Below are positions 21,863 to 38,388 of a stretch of DNA of 64,000 nt, in pieces. Made by a program: the position numbers and the translations under genes. The stretch is from positions 124,001-188,000 of IMG/VR virus record IMGVR_UViG_3300041402_000314. One strand, given 5' to 3'. Every line of letters starts with the position of its first letter. Positions within the stretch are counted from its first letter, which is position 1. The notes under the pieces were generated by a model, which was not told the DNA's origin, did no database searches, and saw only the letters and a program-made list of their open reading frames with translations.

Positions 21863-22207
21863 TTATGAAGTAATTCTACCAGCTTTCGAAGCGTCTTCAG
21901 CGTATATACTGAGAGGAAAGTTAAACGATGCGTACCTATCTCTTTCGACACCCAGACCAAATGGTGGGAATCTCATTGCTTCGAGTTCATCCCTAGAAAC
22001 GTATCCTAACTCAGGGAACCCTTGCCCAAGATCACAGAGACCGAAGAACATTCTGCTCTCCTCGTCATATTCCGTAATTAACCATGTACATGCTCCGCCA
22101 CCGAAAAACTTAACTACTGGTATGAAGTCAGACTCCCCACCAGACTCTTGATTGATCTTAGAGTTCCTAACCAGCTTATCTTCGATTATCTTAGTCATTA
22201 GTTTCAT
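21863..22207 (-). CDS. DUF2958-like protein
   Basis: PVVKFF.GGA.TWLITE.D.....FGLCDLG.G.PELGYVS..EL......G..VERD. Confidence 0.8.
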   Translation of the reverse strand: MKLMTKIIEDKLVRNSKINQESGGESDFIPVVKFFGGGACTWLITEYDEESRMFFGLCDLGQGFPELGYVSRDELEAMRFPPFGLGVERDRYASFNFPLSIYAEDASKAGRITS

Positions 22208-22237: not shown

Positions 22238-22288
22238 ATTATGAGTACAGCTTATCATAGGTAGATGTGGAAGTCAAGAACTATTTTA
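22238..22288 (-). repeat. 51-bp promoter-containing direct repeat, copy B
   Basis: TTGACT-17-TAAGCT; see 20945-20995. Confidence 0.8.
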
Positions 22289-22289
22289 T

Positions 22290-22325
22290 AAAAAAAGGTA
22301 GGCCGAATTAACGACCCACCTTTTT
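22290..22325 (-). terminator. Intrinsic terminator closing the channel/TAXI/YjfK/PspA operon
   Basis: On - strand GGTGGGTCG/CGGCCTACC stem (needs G-U pairs, so strand-specific) then T7. Confidence 0.75.
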
Positions 22326-22346
22326 GATACCATATATTTATTATTG

Positions 22347-23108
22347 TTACTTCTTAAGAGCAGCTAAACGATCTTGAATACTCATAGTGGAAGTATCATC
22401 TCCACCACCCATAGCAGCCGTGATATTGGGGTCTTCATCGAGTCCACCAGTAGGCTTCAGAAGACGTGCTTTCATTGTTGATGCATCGGCAGACGCTTTG
22501 GCATCATCAGTACGTTTCTGCATGGCTTCGATAGCAGTATTGATACCACCTGTCTTGCTCCTAATACCACTGGCAAGCTCGGCACGTTTCGCCTTCTTCT
22601 TAGCACGTTCCTCTGCCAGTTGTGCTTTCTGCATACCCTGTTTTGCCTTCTTAAGTTCGGCACGAGCATCTTTGAGAGTATCAGCCGCTTCAGAAGCGGT
22701 AGCTTCGAGTTCATCCAACATTTCCTTGGCATCGATAGCTTCTTGCTTCTCACGCTCGACATCATCTCCCATTTCTTCGAGAAGACCAAGAAGGGTTCCG
22801 AGACTAGCGGATAGAGAGGCAACCTTTGTATCATCGTCTCCTGCTTCTGCTATCTGATTCTGAAGAGTCTCGGCAGCTTGTAACCTCTGATTATAGAGCT
22901 TGACGATTTCATCCGCTTCCCTCTGCTCCTTTCCATGCTCGACTCTCGCCTGACCAGCTTCTTTAAGAATCTGATTTAGGTTATCATCCATCATTTTGAT
23001 GGTGGCTTCAGTAGCTCCCTCGGTATCGTATCTAACGATAGCACCAGCAAGAGCCTCACCCGCATCTTCGATTTTTGTTTTTGTAAACGCTGATAGAAAT
23101 TTTAACAT
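22347..23108 (-). CDS. PspA/IM30-like coiled-coil protein (YjfJ-like)
   Basis: 253 aa all-helical Ala/Glu/Lys-rich; ends IQDRLAALKK; adjacent to a YjfK-like gene as in yjfJ-yjfK. Confidence 0.7.
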   Translation of the reverse strand: MLKFLSAFTKTKIEDAGEALAGAIVRYDTEGATEATIKMMDDNLNQILKEAGQARVEHGKEQREADEIVKLYNQRLQAAETLQNQIAEAGDDDTKVASLSASLGTLLGLLEEMGDDVEREKQEAIDAKEMLDELEATASEAADTLKDARAELKKAKQGMQKAQLAEERAKKKAKRAELASGIRSKTGGINTAIEAMQKRTDDAKASADASTMKARLLKPTGGLDEDPNITAAMGGGDDTSTMSIQDRLAALKK

Positions 23109-23127
23109 TTTATTTCTCCTTTTTATT

Positions 23128-23808
23128 TTAGATTATTGATAGTGACATAGGATGAATTGTAAATCCTTTATATATGACTATATTAGCAAATACCTCACCC
23201 ATATCATCTTCCAGATCGAATTCGACTGCTACCAGTAGATATTCTGTTTCATCGCTGTTGAGAAACCTGTTGAATAGCATAGCATCACTATTATATTCGC
23301 CTTCTTCGGCTTCAGATTGTTCACCAGTTATTTCAATATCTTCCACAATACTGACTGGAGATGACCATTCACCGCTACCCCAAAGTCGTAAATAGGTTTC
23401 ATCGTCTGGAGTCTCAATATCGGAATAGCCTATTAGACCGTCATCCGTATCAAGCCAATCACTCCAATCTTCATCCGATTGAGGCTCAAACCCATAAGTC
23501 TGTTTGAAGAGAATAACTTCAGAACCATCCTTATTGAGTTGCATGAATACTTCATTATCGTTTTCCGTATTCTTCATGTAGACTCTATAAGTCTTATCTC
23601 CGAATATCTTGAGTCGGGAAATTGCGAGGACGGTGTATTTACCGCCCTCGAACCATTCCAATTCAGGATTTAAGAGAGATGGGGTATCATCCAAAGTTAT
23701 CAGGCTGTTTAATCTGATTCCTAGAGGAGCATCATCATGGACAATACCCTTTTTGGAATCCTTACGTTCCTTTAACTTATGTTTGAAGTAATCACCGACA
23801 AAACTCAT
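23128..23808 (-). CDS. DUF2491/YjfK-like protein
   Basis: PLGIRL...LD, W..WL....GLIG, Y.R.W, MLF.R....EYLLV..E pattern. Confidence 0.7.
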   Translation of the reverse strand: MSFVGDYFKHKLKERKDSKKGIVHDDAPLGIRLNSLITLDDTPSLLNPELEWFEGGKYTVLAISRLKIFGDKTYRVYMKNTENDNEVFMQLNKDGSEVILFKQTYGFEPQSDEDWSDWLDTDDGLIGYSDIETPDDETYLRLWGSGEWSSPVSIVEDIEITGEQSEAEEGEYNSDAMLFNRFLNSDETEYLLVAVEFDLEDDMGEVFANIVIYKGFTIHPMSLSII

Positions 23809-23810
23809 GA

Positions 23811-25415
23811 TTATCTCCCACTCGCCTGATTTCTGATAGAGGGTATAACACTATTTATCTCTTCCAGAAGGGCATCAAATACGGCTGGATTTTTATTCTT
23901 CCATTTGTTGGAAATGATCATATCCATATCAACGGTAATGGTATCGATATCACTGCTACCAAGCCATCCAGATTGGAGTTTACCGTAAGTACCTGCCTTG
24001 ATAGTACCGAACTTATAAATTGGCTTATTACCGGGGTCTTTCAGATTATCAAGACTACCATCTTCGATATTAGCCAATTTAAGTTCACCTCTACTACCAA
24101 GTTGTACGGCATTCCTCATGCTTCTGGCATTGATACCAGTAACAGCCAGTAAACAATCGGCTTGCCCATTAGTAACCTTAAGTACATTACCGCTCATACT
24201 CTTAGAGACCTTTACATTCACATCAGCATAATCGCTATTCTCGGCAACGAAATTTGCCCATGTCAGATAAGAACCAGAGTTTTCATAACCCACGAGAACC
24301 GTATTACCTGAGTCGAGGTCATCAATAGAATTGATATCGGCTTCAGTGTTACAAATAAGATGAGCATACTCGGTATATACAGACGGTATCCTTGAATAAT
24401 TTAGCTTAGAGTTGTTCTTCTGAGCATGAATCCAGTAACCGTCTCTTTGTACAAATGCAGCATCACAATGACCAGCATCTATTTTCTTGAGGTTATCCAT
24501 AGTACCTTCTGTACGAAGAACCTTTCCGTCTACGCTCATAGTAGCATTAGAAATCACGTTACCTGCATAGTAATACATACCGTCTGTTCCACCTGTACAA
24601 ATAGTTAGTGTAGGCTTAACGGCATTTGTTACGTCCTGAGATAGTGCAATATCAGCATCAACGCCTTCAGGAAGATAATTGGTATCGCGTGTACCGCTCA
24701 TCTGAGATACTTCACGATCAAGACGATCAAGCTTTGCTCTTAGCTCGGCATTCTCTCTTGCTTGCATATTAGCTTCCTGTCTCCAACCCTGATAACCAGC
24801 ATTGTTATATTGGTTATATGCAAAACTATTATTTGAATTATCTAGCATCATGTAAAGGAACATCGCATCCCACATACCGTAGCTCGAAGAACCGTAATAT
24901 ACATATGATGGCGCATTGTAGCCACTATAATATGAAGTCCTTCTGGTATCATAAGTTCTCGGATTATAATTAGAAGTCCTTTGGGCAATTTTATTATTAC
25001 TATATTTTCTCTTCAGCTTTGAAGTACGTACTGCTTTCTGCTTAGAGGTCTGAGTCTTCTTATTCGACTTCTTGAATTTAGAAGTATACGCAGCACTACG
25101 CTTCTTCGCTACAGTCTTCGGTGCTTTATTTTTAGCCCTTTGCTTACTAATCTTTGTCTTAGATGAGGTAGTCTTTGAGACTGCCTTCATTTTTCTCTTC
25201 GGCCTAGAAGTTGTTACGGTCTTAGACCTTGAAGAACTTCTCTTTCTTGCGTTTGAGAAAGAGCTTTTTGAACTACCCCAACTCTTTGAACTTGAGAAGC
25301 TTTTGGATGAAGAAAAACTCCTTCCGCCTCCACCCCTCCGAGCCTCTACTTCAACATAAGTCCATGTTGATATGAGAATCAATGCCAGTGCTATAATACT
25401 CAATTTGGTTTTCAT
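23811..25415 (-). CDS. Exported fusion: Ser/Lys/Arg-rich region plus TAXI-family TRAP solute-binding domain
   Basis: Signal peptide then ARRGGGGRS; C-terminal ICTGG..G.YY..G, TEGT.DN......DAAFVQ.D, Y.E..HL, SI.DL, G...SGS..T. Confidence 0.75.
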   Translation of the reverse strand: MKTKLSIIALALILISTWTYVEVEARRGGGGRSFSSSKSFSSSKSWGSSKSSFSNARKRSSSRSKTVTTSRPKRKMKAVSKTTSSKTKISKQRAKNKAPKTVAKKRSAAYTSKFKKSNKKTQTSKQKAVRTSKLKRKYSNNKIAQRTSNYNPRTYDTRRTSYYSGYNAPSYVYYGSSSYGMWDAMFLYMMLDNSNNSFAYNQYNNAGYQGWRQEANMQARENAELRAKLDRLDREVSQMSGTRDTNYLPEGVDADIALSQDVTNAVKPTLTICTGGTDGMYYYAGNVISNATMSVDGKVLRTEGTMDNLKKIDAGHCDAAFVQRDGYWIHAQKNNSKLNYSRIPSVYTEYAHLICNTEADINSIDDLDSGNTVLVGYENSGSYLTWANFVAENSDYADVNVKVSKSMSGNVLKVTNGQADCLLAVTGINARSMRNAVQLGSRGELKLANIEDGSLDNLKDPGNKPIYKFGTIKAGTYGKLQSGWLGSSDIDTITVDMDMIISNKWKNKNPAVFDALLEEINSVIPSIRNQASGR

Positions 25416-25442
25416 GTTACTTTATCCTCCTATATTTCCTTA

Positions 25443-26477
25443 TTAGTTTAAATGTAGTTTTAAAATATTGCTCCACCTTGAACATGACGTATAATCAATT
25501 ACACTCCGATTCACCTCCTCCCTCAATTTACTATTCTGTTTAAATAATATTCCATAACTTTCTATATTGAAGTTAGCTTTATGTAAGGTAACACTATTGT
25601 TATCCTTTGTCAAGTGTTTTAATGTAGCATAGTCATAAAATACCACATCATGTAAACCTGCCTCCAGAGATTCGAGAGCATCTTCAGCGGAATCGAGACT
25701 TGAATATTGTACTCCCAGACTAGATAAAAGTTTACTACTGGCAGTATATGACGATGTAGCTATCTTCCCTTTATTACTTAACCACTTCACTGACTTATTG
25801 GTTTCGCTGATATTACTTAATGTAGCAGTAGCCGCCAGAGTAGCTATAAATGAACTGACTAAGATCAGTGCAATATACATCCAGACGGTAGTAGCAAGAC
25901 GGCCTTTTGCTGTTTTGGGAGCTTTATCACCTAGTCCGACAGTAGTAGCTACCACATGAGTAAACCAATATGTATTGAGCCAACCCTTAAAGCCTTTTCC
26001 AAAATCAGGATTATTACGCTCAAAATACCATATAACGGTAGCGATGAAACCGACAATAATTAAATAATTGATACAGGCGATTATAAAATCTACAGATATT
26101 AAGTTACTGATTACCATTAAGAATGTATTATCGGATTTTGTGGCTATTCCAGACGGTGAAGAAAAGTAAGGGTGTGAGAAATCATATTCCTTTTCTCTCT
26201 CGGATGTAATTGTGATAGCGGATAGACCGACATCGACCTCACCAGTTTTGATTTGAGAAAGTATATCTGTTAAAGAAAGTTCCTTTATATCGTAAGTATA
26301 ACCATTCCTAGAAGCAACTGCTTTCCAGAGGTCTATTGTGATTCCATACCAGATACCTCTCTCATCCTTCATAGAGAAAGGTGGCATCTCATCTGTAGCC
26401 ACTACCAAATGGGTTTGGGCATTAGCAGTAGATGTAATGCTTAGAATTAATAGTATGTAAATAAGTAGTCTTTTCAT
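25443..26477 (-). CDS. GluR0-like ligand-gated K+ channel (SBP S1 - TM1 - pore - TM2 - SBP S2)
   Basis: Signal peptide; PPFS, SAITITSERE, DFSHPY (SBP family 3); two TM helices around TTVGLGD; VFYD...ESYGI. Start set at MKRLL after RBS GGAG. Confidence 0.85.
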   Translation of the reverse strand: MKRLLIYILLILSITSTANAQTHLVVATDEMPPFSMKDERGIWYGITIDLWKAVASRNGYTYDIKELSLTDILSQIKTGEVDVGLSAITITSEREKEYDFSHPYFSSPSGIATKSDNTFLMVISNLISVDFIIACINYLIIVGFIATVIWYFERNNPDFGKGFKGWLNTYWFTHVVATTVGLGDKAPKTAKGRLATTVWMYIALILVSSFIATLAATATLSNISETNKSVKWLSNKGKIATSSYTASSKLLSSLGVQYSSLDSAEDALESLEAGLHDVVFYDYATLKHLTKDNNSVTLHKANFNIESYGILFKQNSKLREEVNRSVIDYTSCSRWSNILKLHLN

Positions 26478-26487
26478 GATTGTCTCC

Positions 26488-26516
26488 ATTATACCTAATT
26501 ATAATTTATTTGTCAA
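26488..26516 (-). promoter_or_regulatory. Consensus sigma70 promoter of the channel operon
   Basis: TTGACA-17-TATAAT on - strand. Confidence 0.75.
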
Positions 26517-26878
26517 GCTTTATTTTCAATTTCCCTTATGGAATGTTCCATACTTTTAATTCCATTATTGTTTTCTTTTCTTATCTCGAAGAAATTTTCC
26601 ATCGACAAATCTCTATACATTAAAAGTCTAGCATATATTGAGGTGAAGTCATTATTAATTTTGAATACATCACCTGTTGTTTTTAAGTCCTGATTAAATC
26701 TAATTACATATATAATAGCTTGGGCAGAATATTTCTTTCTACCTGCTTTCTTCATTTTATATGCTAGTTGTTTAAATTCCTTAAAGATATGTGGATTTTC
26801 TTGGTGGAATTCTTTAAACCGTTTTAAGGTCCTTTTTGAATAATGTCCAAATAACCCATTCCATTTTTCGTCTTTCAT
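26513..26878 (-). CDS. Phage hypothetical protein, paralog of 33332-33706
   Basis: F..FH.ENP.I...F...A......GRK.YS....IR.....FKINND....YARL...FF. Confidence 0.7.
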   Translation of the reverse strand: MKDEKWNGLFGHYSKRTLKRFKEFHQENPHIFKEFKQLAYKMKKAGRKKYSAQAIIYVIRFNQDLKTTGDVFKINNDFTSIYARLLMYRDLSMENFFEIRKENNNGIKSMEHSIREIENKA

Positions 26879-37319: not shown

Positions 37320-37377
37320 GGAAGGACAGTGGGTAGCTCCCATTGATGATGTGTTTACTCCATATCATCTTACTTCC
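37320..37377 (+). ncRNA. Putative three-way-junction structured RNA, copy 2 (5' leader of nuclease gene)
   Basis: P1 GGAAG/CTTCC, GA, P2 CAGTGGG/CCCATTG with GCTCC, P3 ATGATGTG/CATATCAT, CTTA; starts 6 nt after TATAAATA 37307-37314. Confidence 0.55.
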
Positions 37378-37407
37378 ATACATAACTTAAATAATGGAGT
37401 AAACATT

Positions 37408-38388
37408 ATGAAAGAAAAAATAATTTGTCATATTTGCTATAAAGAATTTAATTCTATTCTTAGTTTATCGAGACACATCAAACCCGCTCACAGTATATCA
37501 AGTAAAGATTATTTTGATAAATTTATCAAAAAAGAGAAAAGTGGTTTATGCTCAGTATGTTCAAATCCTACTCGTTTTGTTAATTTCGGTATAGGATACA
37601 AAAAATATTGTTCAAATAGCTGTCATAACAGAGATAAGAAAGCTCTGACAGATATAAGAGATGCACTTATCTATGAAGAAAAAATAAAAACCGAAACGAT
37701 AGTTTTTGACTGTGAGATTTGCGGATATAAAATTTTTAATAACTATCATGGTATTGGTTCTCATCTAAAACATAAACATAACTTATCTATACAAGAATAT
37801 TATGATAAATATTATTTAGAAAATATATTAGATAAGAAATGTAACATTTGTGACCGAGAAACATCATTTCGCTCTTTAGAAGTTGGGTATACTAAATATT
37901 GCTCTATTTCTTGTAGTAACAAGGAAGAGGTTAACATATTAGCAAGAAAGAAAGGTATAAATAAGAAAGAAGTAAAGGAGAGACAGTCTCGTAATTTATC
38001 ACAGAGAATTTTAAATGGGACTTTTAATCCATTCGCTAAAAAATTTAAAACTGGATATTTTTATTCTGAGAAAAATCAGAAAGATTTGTATTACCGTTCA
38101 TCATATGAATTAAAAGCATATCAAATGTTGGAACAGATGTCTTTAGTTAACATATATGAAACTGAACCATTTAGAATACCTTATAAGGATATGAAAGGTG
38201 TAACTAGAAATTATATACCTGATATTTTGATTATCTATGAAGATGGTATGAGAGAATTGGTAGAAGTGAAACCAGAAAATTTATTAAAGGATGAAACCAT
38301 TCAAATAAAAACAGAATCTGCCAAACAGTATTGTAAAGCCAATAACATGTCCTTTAATATATGGACTGAAAAATTCCTAGAACTATAA
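37408..38388 (+). CDS. Free-standing putative homing endonuclease: repeated Zn fingers plus TnsA-like PD-(D/E)xK domain
   Basis: CxxC...HxxxxH and CxxC...YC repeats; YRSSYE...EPF.IPY....Y.PD.......LVEVKP; start revised to ATG 37408 after GGAG. Confidence 0.75.
   Translation: MKEKIICHICYKEFNSILSLSRHIKPAHSISSKDYFDKFIKKEKSGLCSVCSNPTRFVNFGIGYKKYCSNSCHNRDKKALTDIRDALIYEEKIKTETIVFDCEICGYKIFNNYHGIGSHLKHKHNLSIQEYYDKYYLENILDKKCNICDRETSFRSLEVGYTKYCSISCSNKEEVNILARKKGINKKEVKERQSRNLSQRILNGTFNPFAKKFKTGYFYSEKNQKDLYYRSSYELKAYQMLEQMSLVNIYETEPFRIPYKDMKGVTRNYIPDILIIYEDGMRELVEVKPENLLKDETIQIKTESAKQYCKANNMSFNIWTEKFLEL

Follow-up and report, generated by a model that had tools for sequence, protein, structure and literature searches.

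A phage-borne gene cassette joins a GluR0-type K+ channel to a divergent PspA-like module: a possible system for host membrane homeostasis

The 64,000-nucleotide stretch of DNA considered here (positions 124,001 to 188,000 of IMG/VR record IMGVR_UViG_3300041402_000314; hereafter the window) belongs to a 204-kb uncultivated viral contig and carries a compact cassette of four minus-strand genes, whose products are named P1 to P4 in the order of transcription. P1 (open reading frame (ORF) 25443-26477, 344 aa) is a predicted ligand-gated K+ channel, P2 (23811-25415, 534 aa) a predicted secreted protein ending in a TAXI-type binding domain, P3 (23128-23808, 226 aa) a DUF2491 protein resembling Escherichia coli YjfK, and P4 (22347-23108, 253 aa) a putative distant member of the PspA/IM30 superfamily. 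The contig encodes T4-type structural and packaging proteins, including the large terminase, the tail sheath, and baseplate hub and wedge proteins. The large terminase is about 40% identical to cyanophage gp17, and a megablast search of the region against GenBank phages returned no DNA-level match. The cassette is located in a leftward block of small genes, across from the terminase gene.

An earlier note on this DNA, made from the sequence alone, had described four tightly spaced minus-strand genes, bounded by a consensus promoter and a strand-specific terminator and forming a self-contained transcription unit. The gene arrangement is as described: the ORFs span 22347-26477, with gaps of 27, 2, and 19 nt between P1 and P2, P2 and P3, and P3 and P4, respectively, and each gene is preceded by a GGAG-type Shine-Dalgarno sequence. 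For P1, the true start is the ATG at 26477, which follows GGAG, and the mechanical ORF start at 26489 is wrong. Both boundary signals were also borne out. The promoter, TTGACA-17-TATAAT (26488..26516, minus strand), matches the sigma-70 consensus at 12/12 positions and is one of only three perfect sites in the window, all of them on the minus strand; when up to one mismatch is allowed, five sites are observed versus 1.5 expected by chance. The intrinsic terminator (22286..22325, minus strand) consists of a hairpin (22325-22292) with a 14-bp stem and a 6-nt loop, followed by a U7 tract. Hairpin and U run together fold at -20.5 kcal/mol (z = -5.5), and none of 200 shuffles folds as well; a simple terminator scan of the window made no call at this hairpin. 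The closest relative, the phage-like locus L007 (79-88% protein identity), keeps both signals at the same positions: its promoter matches at 11/12 with an extended -10, and its terminator reaches -23.4 kcal/mol (z = -6.9) with different stem letters and complete pairing. The boundaries of the transcription unit are therefore real and conserved.

The claim that the unit is self-contained needs two qualifications. The -10 element ends 10 nt ahead of the P1 ATG and is abutted by the GGAG Shine-Dalgarno sequence, so that the transcript would start inside or just after the latter and P1 would be nearly leaderless; the same layout is repeated in L007. Moreover, the stop codon of the upstream ORF (26513-26878; phrog_13625) is located inside the -35 element, and no terminator lies between this ORF and the cassette. 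Thus, read-through from upstream is possible.

The architecture of P1 comprises a signal peptide, an S1 lobe, an M1-P-M2 pore, and an S2 lobe. The Pfam domain SBP_bac_3 (1.8e-26) extends over residues 24-334, with Lig_chan / Ion_trans_2 interposed at 139-250, and the hydrophobic spans after the N-terminal signal peptide cover residues 117-153 and 193-223. Sequence matches in the PDB include glutamine/arginine-binding (GlnBP-like) proteins, the Nostoc ionotropic glutamate receptor (iGluR) homologue 2pyy, Synechocystis GluR0 (1ii5), and GluA2, the last of which aligns with residues 72-245, across the pore region. The selectivity filter reads TTVGLGD in the window and in L007, with GFGD in L095, a third cassette of the same phage lineage (group A), and GYGD in a second lineage (group B). 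Residues T179, G181, G183, and D184 are invariant among the relatives, in line with the K+ selectivity signature T-[VT]-G-[YFL]-G-D. GLG and GFG filter variants exist in K+-selective channels. In the ligand-binding lobes, T91 and R94 of S1 and D282 of S2 are invariant in the alignment of P1 relatives (A4). By analogy with the structures of GlnBP and iGluRs, we take T91 and R94 to contact the alpha-carboxylate, and D282 the alpha-amino group, of an amino-acid ligand. As judged from sequence, the assignment of P1 as a GluR0-type ligand-gated K+ channel is clear-cut, and the channel is probably gated by an amino acid because the S1 threonine and arginine and the S2 aspartate are conserved. Bacterial homologues of GluR0 with comparable identity stand alone, without the cassette. 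Among the five full-length GluR0-like genes retrieved from IMG/VR, three head the cassette, and a tblastn search of P1 against GenBank phages gave partial matches to the substrate-binding domain only.

P2 begins with a signal peptide that has an A-x-A-type cleavage site (between VEA and RR). The following region (residues 25-165) is disordered, polybasic, and rich in Ser, Thr, Lys, and Arg, with a net charge of +43. It leads to an aromatic/hydrophobic motif (..PS[YF]GMWD..FL..ML..), a short coiled coil, and a 'DP.Y.P.GVDAD' motif, all of which are conserved in the family. The C-terminal TAXI-type domain occupies residues ~266-505 and is detected by Pfam NMT1_3 (3.6e-18, 66.6 bits versus a cut-off of 27), by TIGR02122 (4e-21, with 75.2 bits falling under the curated subfamily cut-off of 84.35), and by PDB entry 1us4 (2e-6). 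P2 also matches phrog_6856 (6e-41). Comparison with bacterial homologues places the conserved core of the family in the N-terminal module rather than in the TAXI domain: in the homologues of Magnetominusculus, Hydrogenedentes, and Fundidesulfovibrio, a C-terminal transmembrane (TM) helix takes the place of TAXI. No Pfam model covers this N-terminal module. YjfM (DUF1190) was considered as a counterpart of P2 and rejected, as only low-complexity matches were obtained.

Proteins limited to the N-terminal module of P2 are also found in two large viral contigs that contain neither P3 nor P4 (L102:6211-8011 and L131:4104-7246). In both cases the protein has a signal peptide, a polybasic disordered region, and a C-terminal TM helix, and its gene adjoins that of a K+ channel, which is GluR0-like in L102 and of the Ion_trans type in L131.

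P3 matches Pfam PF10679 (DUF2491) at 1.7e-16 (60.5 bits versus a cut-off of 25) and E. coli YjfK by BLASTP at 9e-10 with 27% identity. Its assignment as a YjfK-like DUF2491 protein is likewise a clear-cut prediction. The protein has neither a signal peptide nor a TM segment, and its AlphaFold2 (AF2) model is mostly beta strand (predicted local distance difference test score (pLDDT) 85.7, predicted template modelling score 0.84). No sequence relatives of P3 were found in the PDB.

P4 belongs to a family of 685 clusters at 50% identity for which Pfam has no model. Pairwise and single-profile searches give little: the BLASTP alignment with YjfJ is collinear and non-significant (E 0.13), and the family profile retrieved only coiled-coil noise from PDB sequences, with Vipp1 at E 6.3. 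Comparison of profiles is more informative. When the P4-family alignment (A1) was compared by hhalign with an alignment of PspA and YjfJ proteins (A5), a full-length match of 217 columns (1-259 versus 1-223) was obtained with 91% probability and E 9.6e-7; with 230 P4-family sequences the value was E 2.7e-7, versus E 0.13-0.2 for reversed-alignment controls. The match pairs the near-invariant D28-P29 of the P4 family with the 'EDP' of PspA, and the C-terminal tails are also paired. Besides PspA and YjfJ of E. coli, the small but diverse A5 contains PspA genes of two GenBank records labelled 'Bacteriophage sp.', of which MT835668 looks bacterial. Its diversity was taken from these genes because the search for YjfJ homologues had given only sequences more than 86% identical; against the resulting near-identical, low-diversity YjfJ-only alignment, the P4 family gave no signal (E 0.51). 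A1 itself was too diverse for pattern scans, and a smaller alignment (A2) was used instead.

The AF2 model of P4 (pLDDT 76) has helices at residues 2-27, 29-89, 93-182, 192-215, and 244-252, in an order that resembles that of ESCRT-III proteins. In a Foldseek search against the PDB, Vipp1 and PspA account for seven of the nine best matches, top ranks included. F4 and K12 are conserved in the N-terminal helix (2-27), and the family shares a C-terminal tail, S-[LIV]-x-[DE]-R-L-A-A-L-[KR], whose R, L, and L are conserved at 92-97%. This tail resembles the MIM1 motif of eukaryotic ESCRT-III proteins, a resemblance that we treat as a lead. Because of the profile-profile match, the fold ranking, and the gene context, P4 is assigned to the PspA/IM30 superfamily, and we conclude that it is probably a divergent member that founds a family of its own.

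All four protein identities proposed in the earlier note hold, with corrections. Its ligand-gated K+ channel is upheld by the SBP_bac_3 domain split by a pore and by the matches to GluR0, 2pyy, and GluA2, and its YjfK-like protein by PF10679 and YjfK itself. The TAXI fusion is correct as a description of P2, given NMT1_3, TIGR02122, and 1us4, but TAXI turns out to be a dispensable part of the family. Similarly, the PspA-like reading of P4 is kept on the three lines of evidence just named, although Pfam does not detect it.

The order P1-P2-P3-P4 is found in phage-like contigs only, in at least eight places and in two lineages, always with P1 directly upstream of the P2-P3-P4 triad. Group A comprises the window, L007, and L095, whose contig ends within the fourth gene. 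Group B comprises L005/L006 (298 kb, beside a T4-type RNA ligase), L010 (301 kb), L013/L103 (a 363-kb IMG/VR contig), L098, and L100. Proteins of the two groups are 28-47% identical. Searches of P3 and P4 against GenBank phages by tblastn gave no match, and scans of IMG/VR with single proteins returned the source contig only. Between the window and L007, the ratio of nonsynonymous to synonymous substitutions (dN/dS) is 0.08-0.17 for all four genes at a dS of ~0.9-1.0; all four are under purifying selection. The G+C content is 0.40 in the cassette versus 0.35 in the window, and at third codon positions (GC3) it is 0.31-0.37 versus 0.26. This mild elevation agrees with an insert that was acquired, though not recently.

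In the tree of P4, group B is placed with Thiosymbion and then with Methylococcaceae, and group A forms a separate deep branch. The approximately unbiased (AU) test rejects a single phage clade (p = 1.6e-5) as well as a clade of phages plus Thiosymbion (p = 5.6e-4), for groups that were named after inspection of the tree. The channel-plus-triad arrangement is therefore present in two phage lineages whose P4 proteins have separate bacterial affinities. Two histories would account for this: a pairing put together on two occasions, or repeated transfer of the module between phages and bacteria, with the channel retained in the phages.

In bacteria, the P2-P3-P4 triad occurs without the channel in Methylobacter, Methylovulum, and other Methylococcaceae, in Magnetominusculus and other Nitrospirota, and in Thiosymbion, Desulfomonilaceae, and Hydrogenedentes; the genes that flank it in Thiosymbion are clearly chromosomal. 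A P3-P4 dyad is found in Oxalobacteraceae, and DUF350 stands beside related modules only in Zavarzinia and an Acetobacteraceae metagenome-assembled genome (MAG). In Fundidesulfovibrio (L009:4706-8768), the gene for a sigma-54 activator immediately precedes those for DUF2491, a P2-like protein, and P4, an arrangement that recalls PspF-pspA. All four genes together were found in no bacterial locus examined. The triad of P2, P3, and P4 is a module taken from bacteria, paralleling the yjfJ-yjfK pair of E. coli.

Several of these bacterial loci have peculiarities of their own. In two Methylococcaceae MAGs (L031:4550-5518 and L034:419-1381), the gene immediately upstream of the triad, in divergent orientation, codes for a KirBac-type K+ channel (IRK_C + Ion_trans_2). 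In Magnetominusculus/Nitrospirota (L022:4794-6197 and L035:5435-6175), the position immediately upstream is taken by genes for a MORN-repeat protein and for a Ser/Thr kinase that has a cyclic-nucleotide-binding domain. Two P4 paralogues stand in tandem in a Desulfomonilales MAG (L024:6382-8786). A contig of Thiosymbion oneisti (L029:929-12178) holds two copies of the whole triad, one inverted relative to the other; P4 is identical between them, and the match scores of P2 and P3 are nearly so. The assembly has either produced a palindrome here or captured a genuine duplication. Finally, a 15.8-kb contig labelled 'Desulfobulbaceae MAG' (L003/L014, JAOTSI010000042.1) has the triad amid many small unannotated genes and a DUF87/Zot-like ATPase, and may be a phage or mobile-element contig binned into the MAG.

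Among the known systems closest to the cassette are bacterial operons described by Ravi et al. (2024, PMC11237479). In these, a dyad of CesT/Tir (YjfI) and YjfJ-type PspA is joined with DUF2491, DUF350, and DUF1190, with an ATP-grasp ligase, and with a K+ channel that senses its ligand inside the cell. This class (group 3 of that study), to which E. coli yjfIJKLMC belongs, shares with the phage cassette the adjacency of a PspA-family protein and DUF2491 and the presence of a K+ channel and envelope proteins in the operon; DUF350 is found in some bacterial relatives of the phage module as well. The differences are considerable. The P4 of the phage is a separate, Pfam-invisible family, P2 has no E. 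coli counterpart, and the channel has an extracellular amino-acid-binding clamshell instead of intracellular ligand sensing. The cassette is phage-borne and without YjfI (CesT/Tir), DUF350, DUF1190, and ATP-grasp; in agreement with this, phmmer searches with E. coli YjfI, YjfL, YjfM, and YjfC gave no match in the phage cassettes.

A PspA-type protein in a large phage is not without precedent either. Yuan & Chen (bioRxiv 10.64898/2026.10.24.761521) reported PF04012-type PspA in 184 huge phages and 667 IMG/VR genomes, with a '2-TM substrate-binding protein' and DUF350 among the listed neighbours (10 cases each). Both data sets thus feature large phages with PspA-type proteins beside membrane and transport genes. 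The survey required a PF04012 match and does not mention DUF2491, TAXI, or potassium channels; as the P4 family gives no such match, that screen would miss it. The classical Psp system (PspF-ABCDE) is comparable in that an ESCRT-III-like effector guards the inner membrane and the proton-motive force, and the sigma-54 activator of Fundidesulfovibrio is placed like PspF. Unlike that system, the phage cassette has no PspB, PspC, or PspF, its partners are DUF2491 and P2, and its promoter is of the sigma-70 type.

P1 can be compared with two kinds of channel. With Synechocystis GluR0 (Slr1257) and other prokaryotic iGluR homologues it shares the S1 - M1-P-M2 - S2 order, a K+-type pore, and the absence of a third TM segment; it differs in its pore sequence (TTVGLGD, or GFGD in L095, rather than GYGD), in being phage-encoded, and in heading a P2-P3-P4 triad. 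Full-text literature searches for GluR0 in phages returned nothing. Virus-encoded K+ channels that manipulate the host membrane potential are familiar as chlorovirus Kcv and related small viral K+ channels. Unlike P1, Kcv is a minimal pore of an algal virus; it has neither a ligand-binding domain nor PspA-like partners.

The earlier note knew of no phage in which this combination had been described. Its novelty must be tempered because the bacterial linkage of PspA (YjfJ), DUF2491, and a K+ channel (PMC11237479) and canonical huge-phage PspA have already been reported. Rather than an entirely new type of system, the cassette is a variation, specific to phages, on the linkage of PspA, DUF2491, and a K+ channel. 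It is built of a GluR0-type channel, a divergent branch of PspA, and an envelope module, the latter two being unannotated.

Taken together, the parts suggest that the phage may manage the membrane and ion balance of its host during infection. The explanation favoured here, held tentatively and at a little less than even confidence, is that of a phage-borne membrane-homeostasis cassette which keeps the membrane of the infected host energised and ionically stable. The predicted locations of its products are the periplasm for the P1 ectodomain and P2, and the cytoplasm for P3 and P4. Host RNA polymerase would transcribe the unit from the consensus sigma-70 promoter. P4, together with P3, would polymerise on the inner face of the cytoplasmic membrane and thereby limit leakage or the loss of proton-motive force. 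P1, as a tetramer, would open on a periplasmic ligand of the amino-acid type and set the K+ conductance, and hence membrane potential and turgor, and P2 could serve in the periplasm either as the sensor of a second ligand or in an auxiliary role to the channel or the membrane. The net effect would be a host membrane that stays energised and ionically stable for the whole infection. Besides the gene identities, the conserved transcription signals, the recurrent gene order, the purifying selection, and the rejection of a single phage clade for P4, this explanation is supported by the recurrence of K+ channels of other types beside related modules (KirBac, L102, L131, and the published yjfJ/DUF2491 operons). 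It is also supported by the conservation of the triad or dyad in many bacterial lineages, in some of which the neighbouring gene is DUF350 or a sigma-54 activator and so recalls the yjf and psp systems.

The same list of parts could compose a clamp on the membrane potential, in which the channel would block DNA injection by superinfecting phages, or tie holin triggering and lysis to an external amino-acid cue, while the triad protects the cell. In favour of such a clamp, the channel occurs only in phage versions of the module, its ligand-binding ectodomain has conserved amino-acid-binding residues, and the cassette is located among small early-type genes with consensus sigma-70 promoters. However, exclusion or holin genes are not linked to the cassette, and PADLOC gave no defence-system match, only coiled-coil noise. 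Sequence cannot separate this alternative from general homeostasis, and we consider it unlikely. Far less probable is a role in nutrition, in which SBP_bac_3 of P1 and TAXI of P2 would sense or take up solutes such as amino acids or dicarboxylates for replication. Both domains do belong to families of transporter binding proteins, and stand-alone TAXI proteins are scattered among many cultivated phages. Nevertheless, a transport role is made unlikely by the lack of a permease: no TRAP membrane subunit, ABC permease or ATPase, or multi-TM transporter gene is present in the window, and no transporter gene was called in the cassette loci with listed genes. Furthermore, the interruption of SBP_bac_3 by a K+ pore is a channel architecture, and TAXI is absent from many bacterial P2-family members.

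As a last alternative, the cassette may be passenger DNA, that is, a host operon captured recently and without a role in infection, with P4 a generic coiled coil. The earlier note had named a common host operon, captured and decaying, as the finding that would speak against its proposal, and half of this description applies, since three of the four genes do form a common bacterial operon. The raised G+C and GC3 across the cassette and the missing Pfam match of P4 point in the same direction. The phage copies, on the other hand, are not decaying: their genes are intact and evolve under purifying selection, and at least eight phage-like contigs from two lineages have kept them. This selection (dN/dS 0.08-0.17 in all four genes), together with recurrence across divergent phage contigs at 28-47% identity, contradicts a neutral passenger, and the conserved promoter and terminator and the absence of the complete set from every bacterial locus examined also oppose it. 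A generic coiled coil, in turn, is at odds with the full-length match between P4 and PspA (E 1e-6 versus 0.13-0.2 for the reversed controls). The passenger explanation is largely refuted and hardly to be expected.

A number of observations also count against the homeostasis explanation, and many of them concern P4. No PF04012 (PspA_IM30) match above the gathering score was obtained for P4 or for six bacterial members of its family, whereas E. coli YjfJ scores 5e-58. A hidden Markov model of the P4 family (230 sequences) scores YjfJ and PspA no better than shuffles. The best Foldseek match has an E of 6.6e-3 (none is at or below 1e-3) with TM-scores of 0.25-0.44, and generic coiled coils score similarly. 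Its N-terminal helix is not clearly amphipathic: the hydrophobic moment of P4 residues 2-19 is 0.27, mid-rank within the protein, versus 0.42-0.45 for PspA and YjfJ. As for P1, the two phage channel clades in its tree may or may not be sisters, so that recruitment may have happened once or twice; with almost no leader, its expression from the cassette promoter is uncertain, and the group B cassettes have no strong promoter directly upstream. The roles ascribed to the P2, P3, and P4 families are inferred from sequence, as are the early expression and the physiological roles put forward in the earlier note. On the bacterial side, yjfIJKL is experimentally uncharacterised, save for up-regulation in heat-evolved E. 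coli (PMC12492005).

If the homeostasis explanation is true, the phage would gain a direct handle on the membrane potential and K+ balance of its host, tied to an ESCRT-III-like repair protein. This would be relevant to the ways in which large lytic phages maintain a productive cell, set the moment of lysis, or withstand abortive-infection systems that target the membrane. The analysis also exposes what appears to be a sizeable unannotated branch of the PspA superfamily, the 685 clusters of the P4 family, as well as a conserved unannotated envelope module in the N-terminal region of P2, and the four genes offer a compact, portable system with which to probe the function of YjfJ/YjfK-type PspA modules. 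A bolder proposal would be that two unrelated phage lineages each joined an amino-acid-gated K+ channel to an unrecognised PspA-like system and that the parts form one machine, with P2 as a channel subunit or sensor, P3 docked on the MIM-like tail of P4, and K+ flux coupled to remodelling of the ESCRT-III type. We regard this as improbable at present; if true, it would represent a new kind of virus-run control of the bacterial membrane potential.

Some further features of the window and of viral contigs may be mentioned. Immediately past the cassette terminator lies a gene for a DUF2958 protein (21863-22207; 5e-30), preceded by a promoter-like site (TTGACT / TATGAT) that is present in L007 too. 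The ORF at 37351-38388 is endonuclease-like in its N-terminal part (phrog_15427 / phrog_3339, homing endonuclease) and of the head-closure type in its C-terminal part (phrog_218); it may represent a structural gene to which a homing endonuclease was fused, or into which one was inserted. Lastly, ~70 further viral contigs from IMG/VR (L108-L175), some of which are giant-virus MAGs, have genes that match the K+ pore region only; K+ channel genes seem to be common in metagenomic viral contigs.

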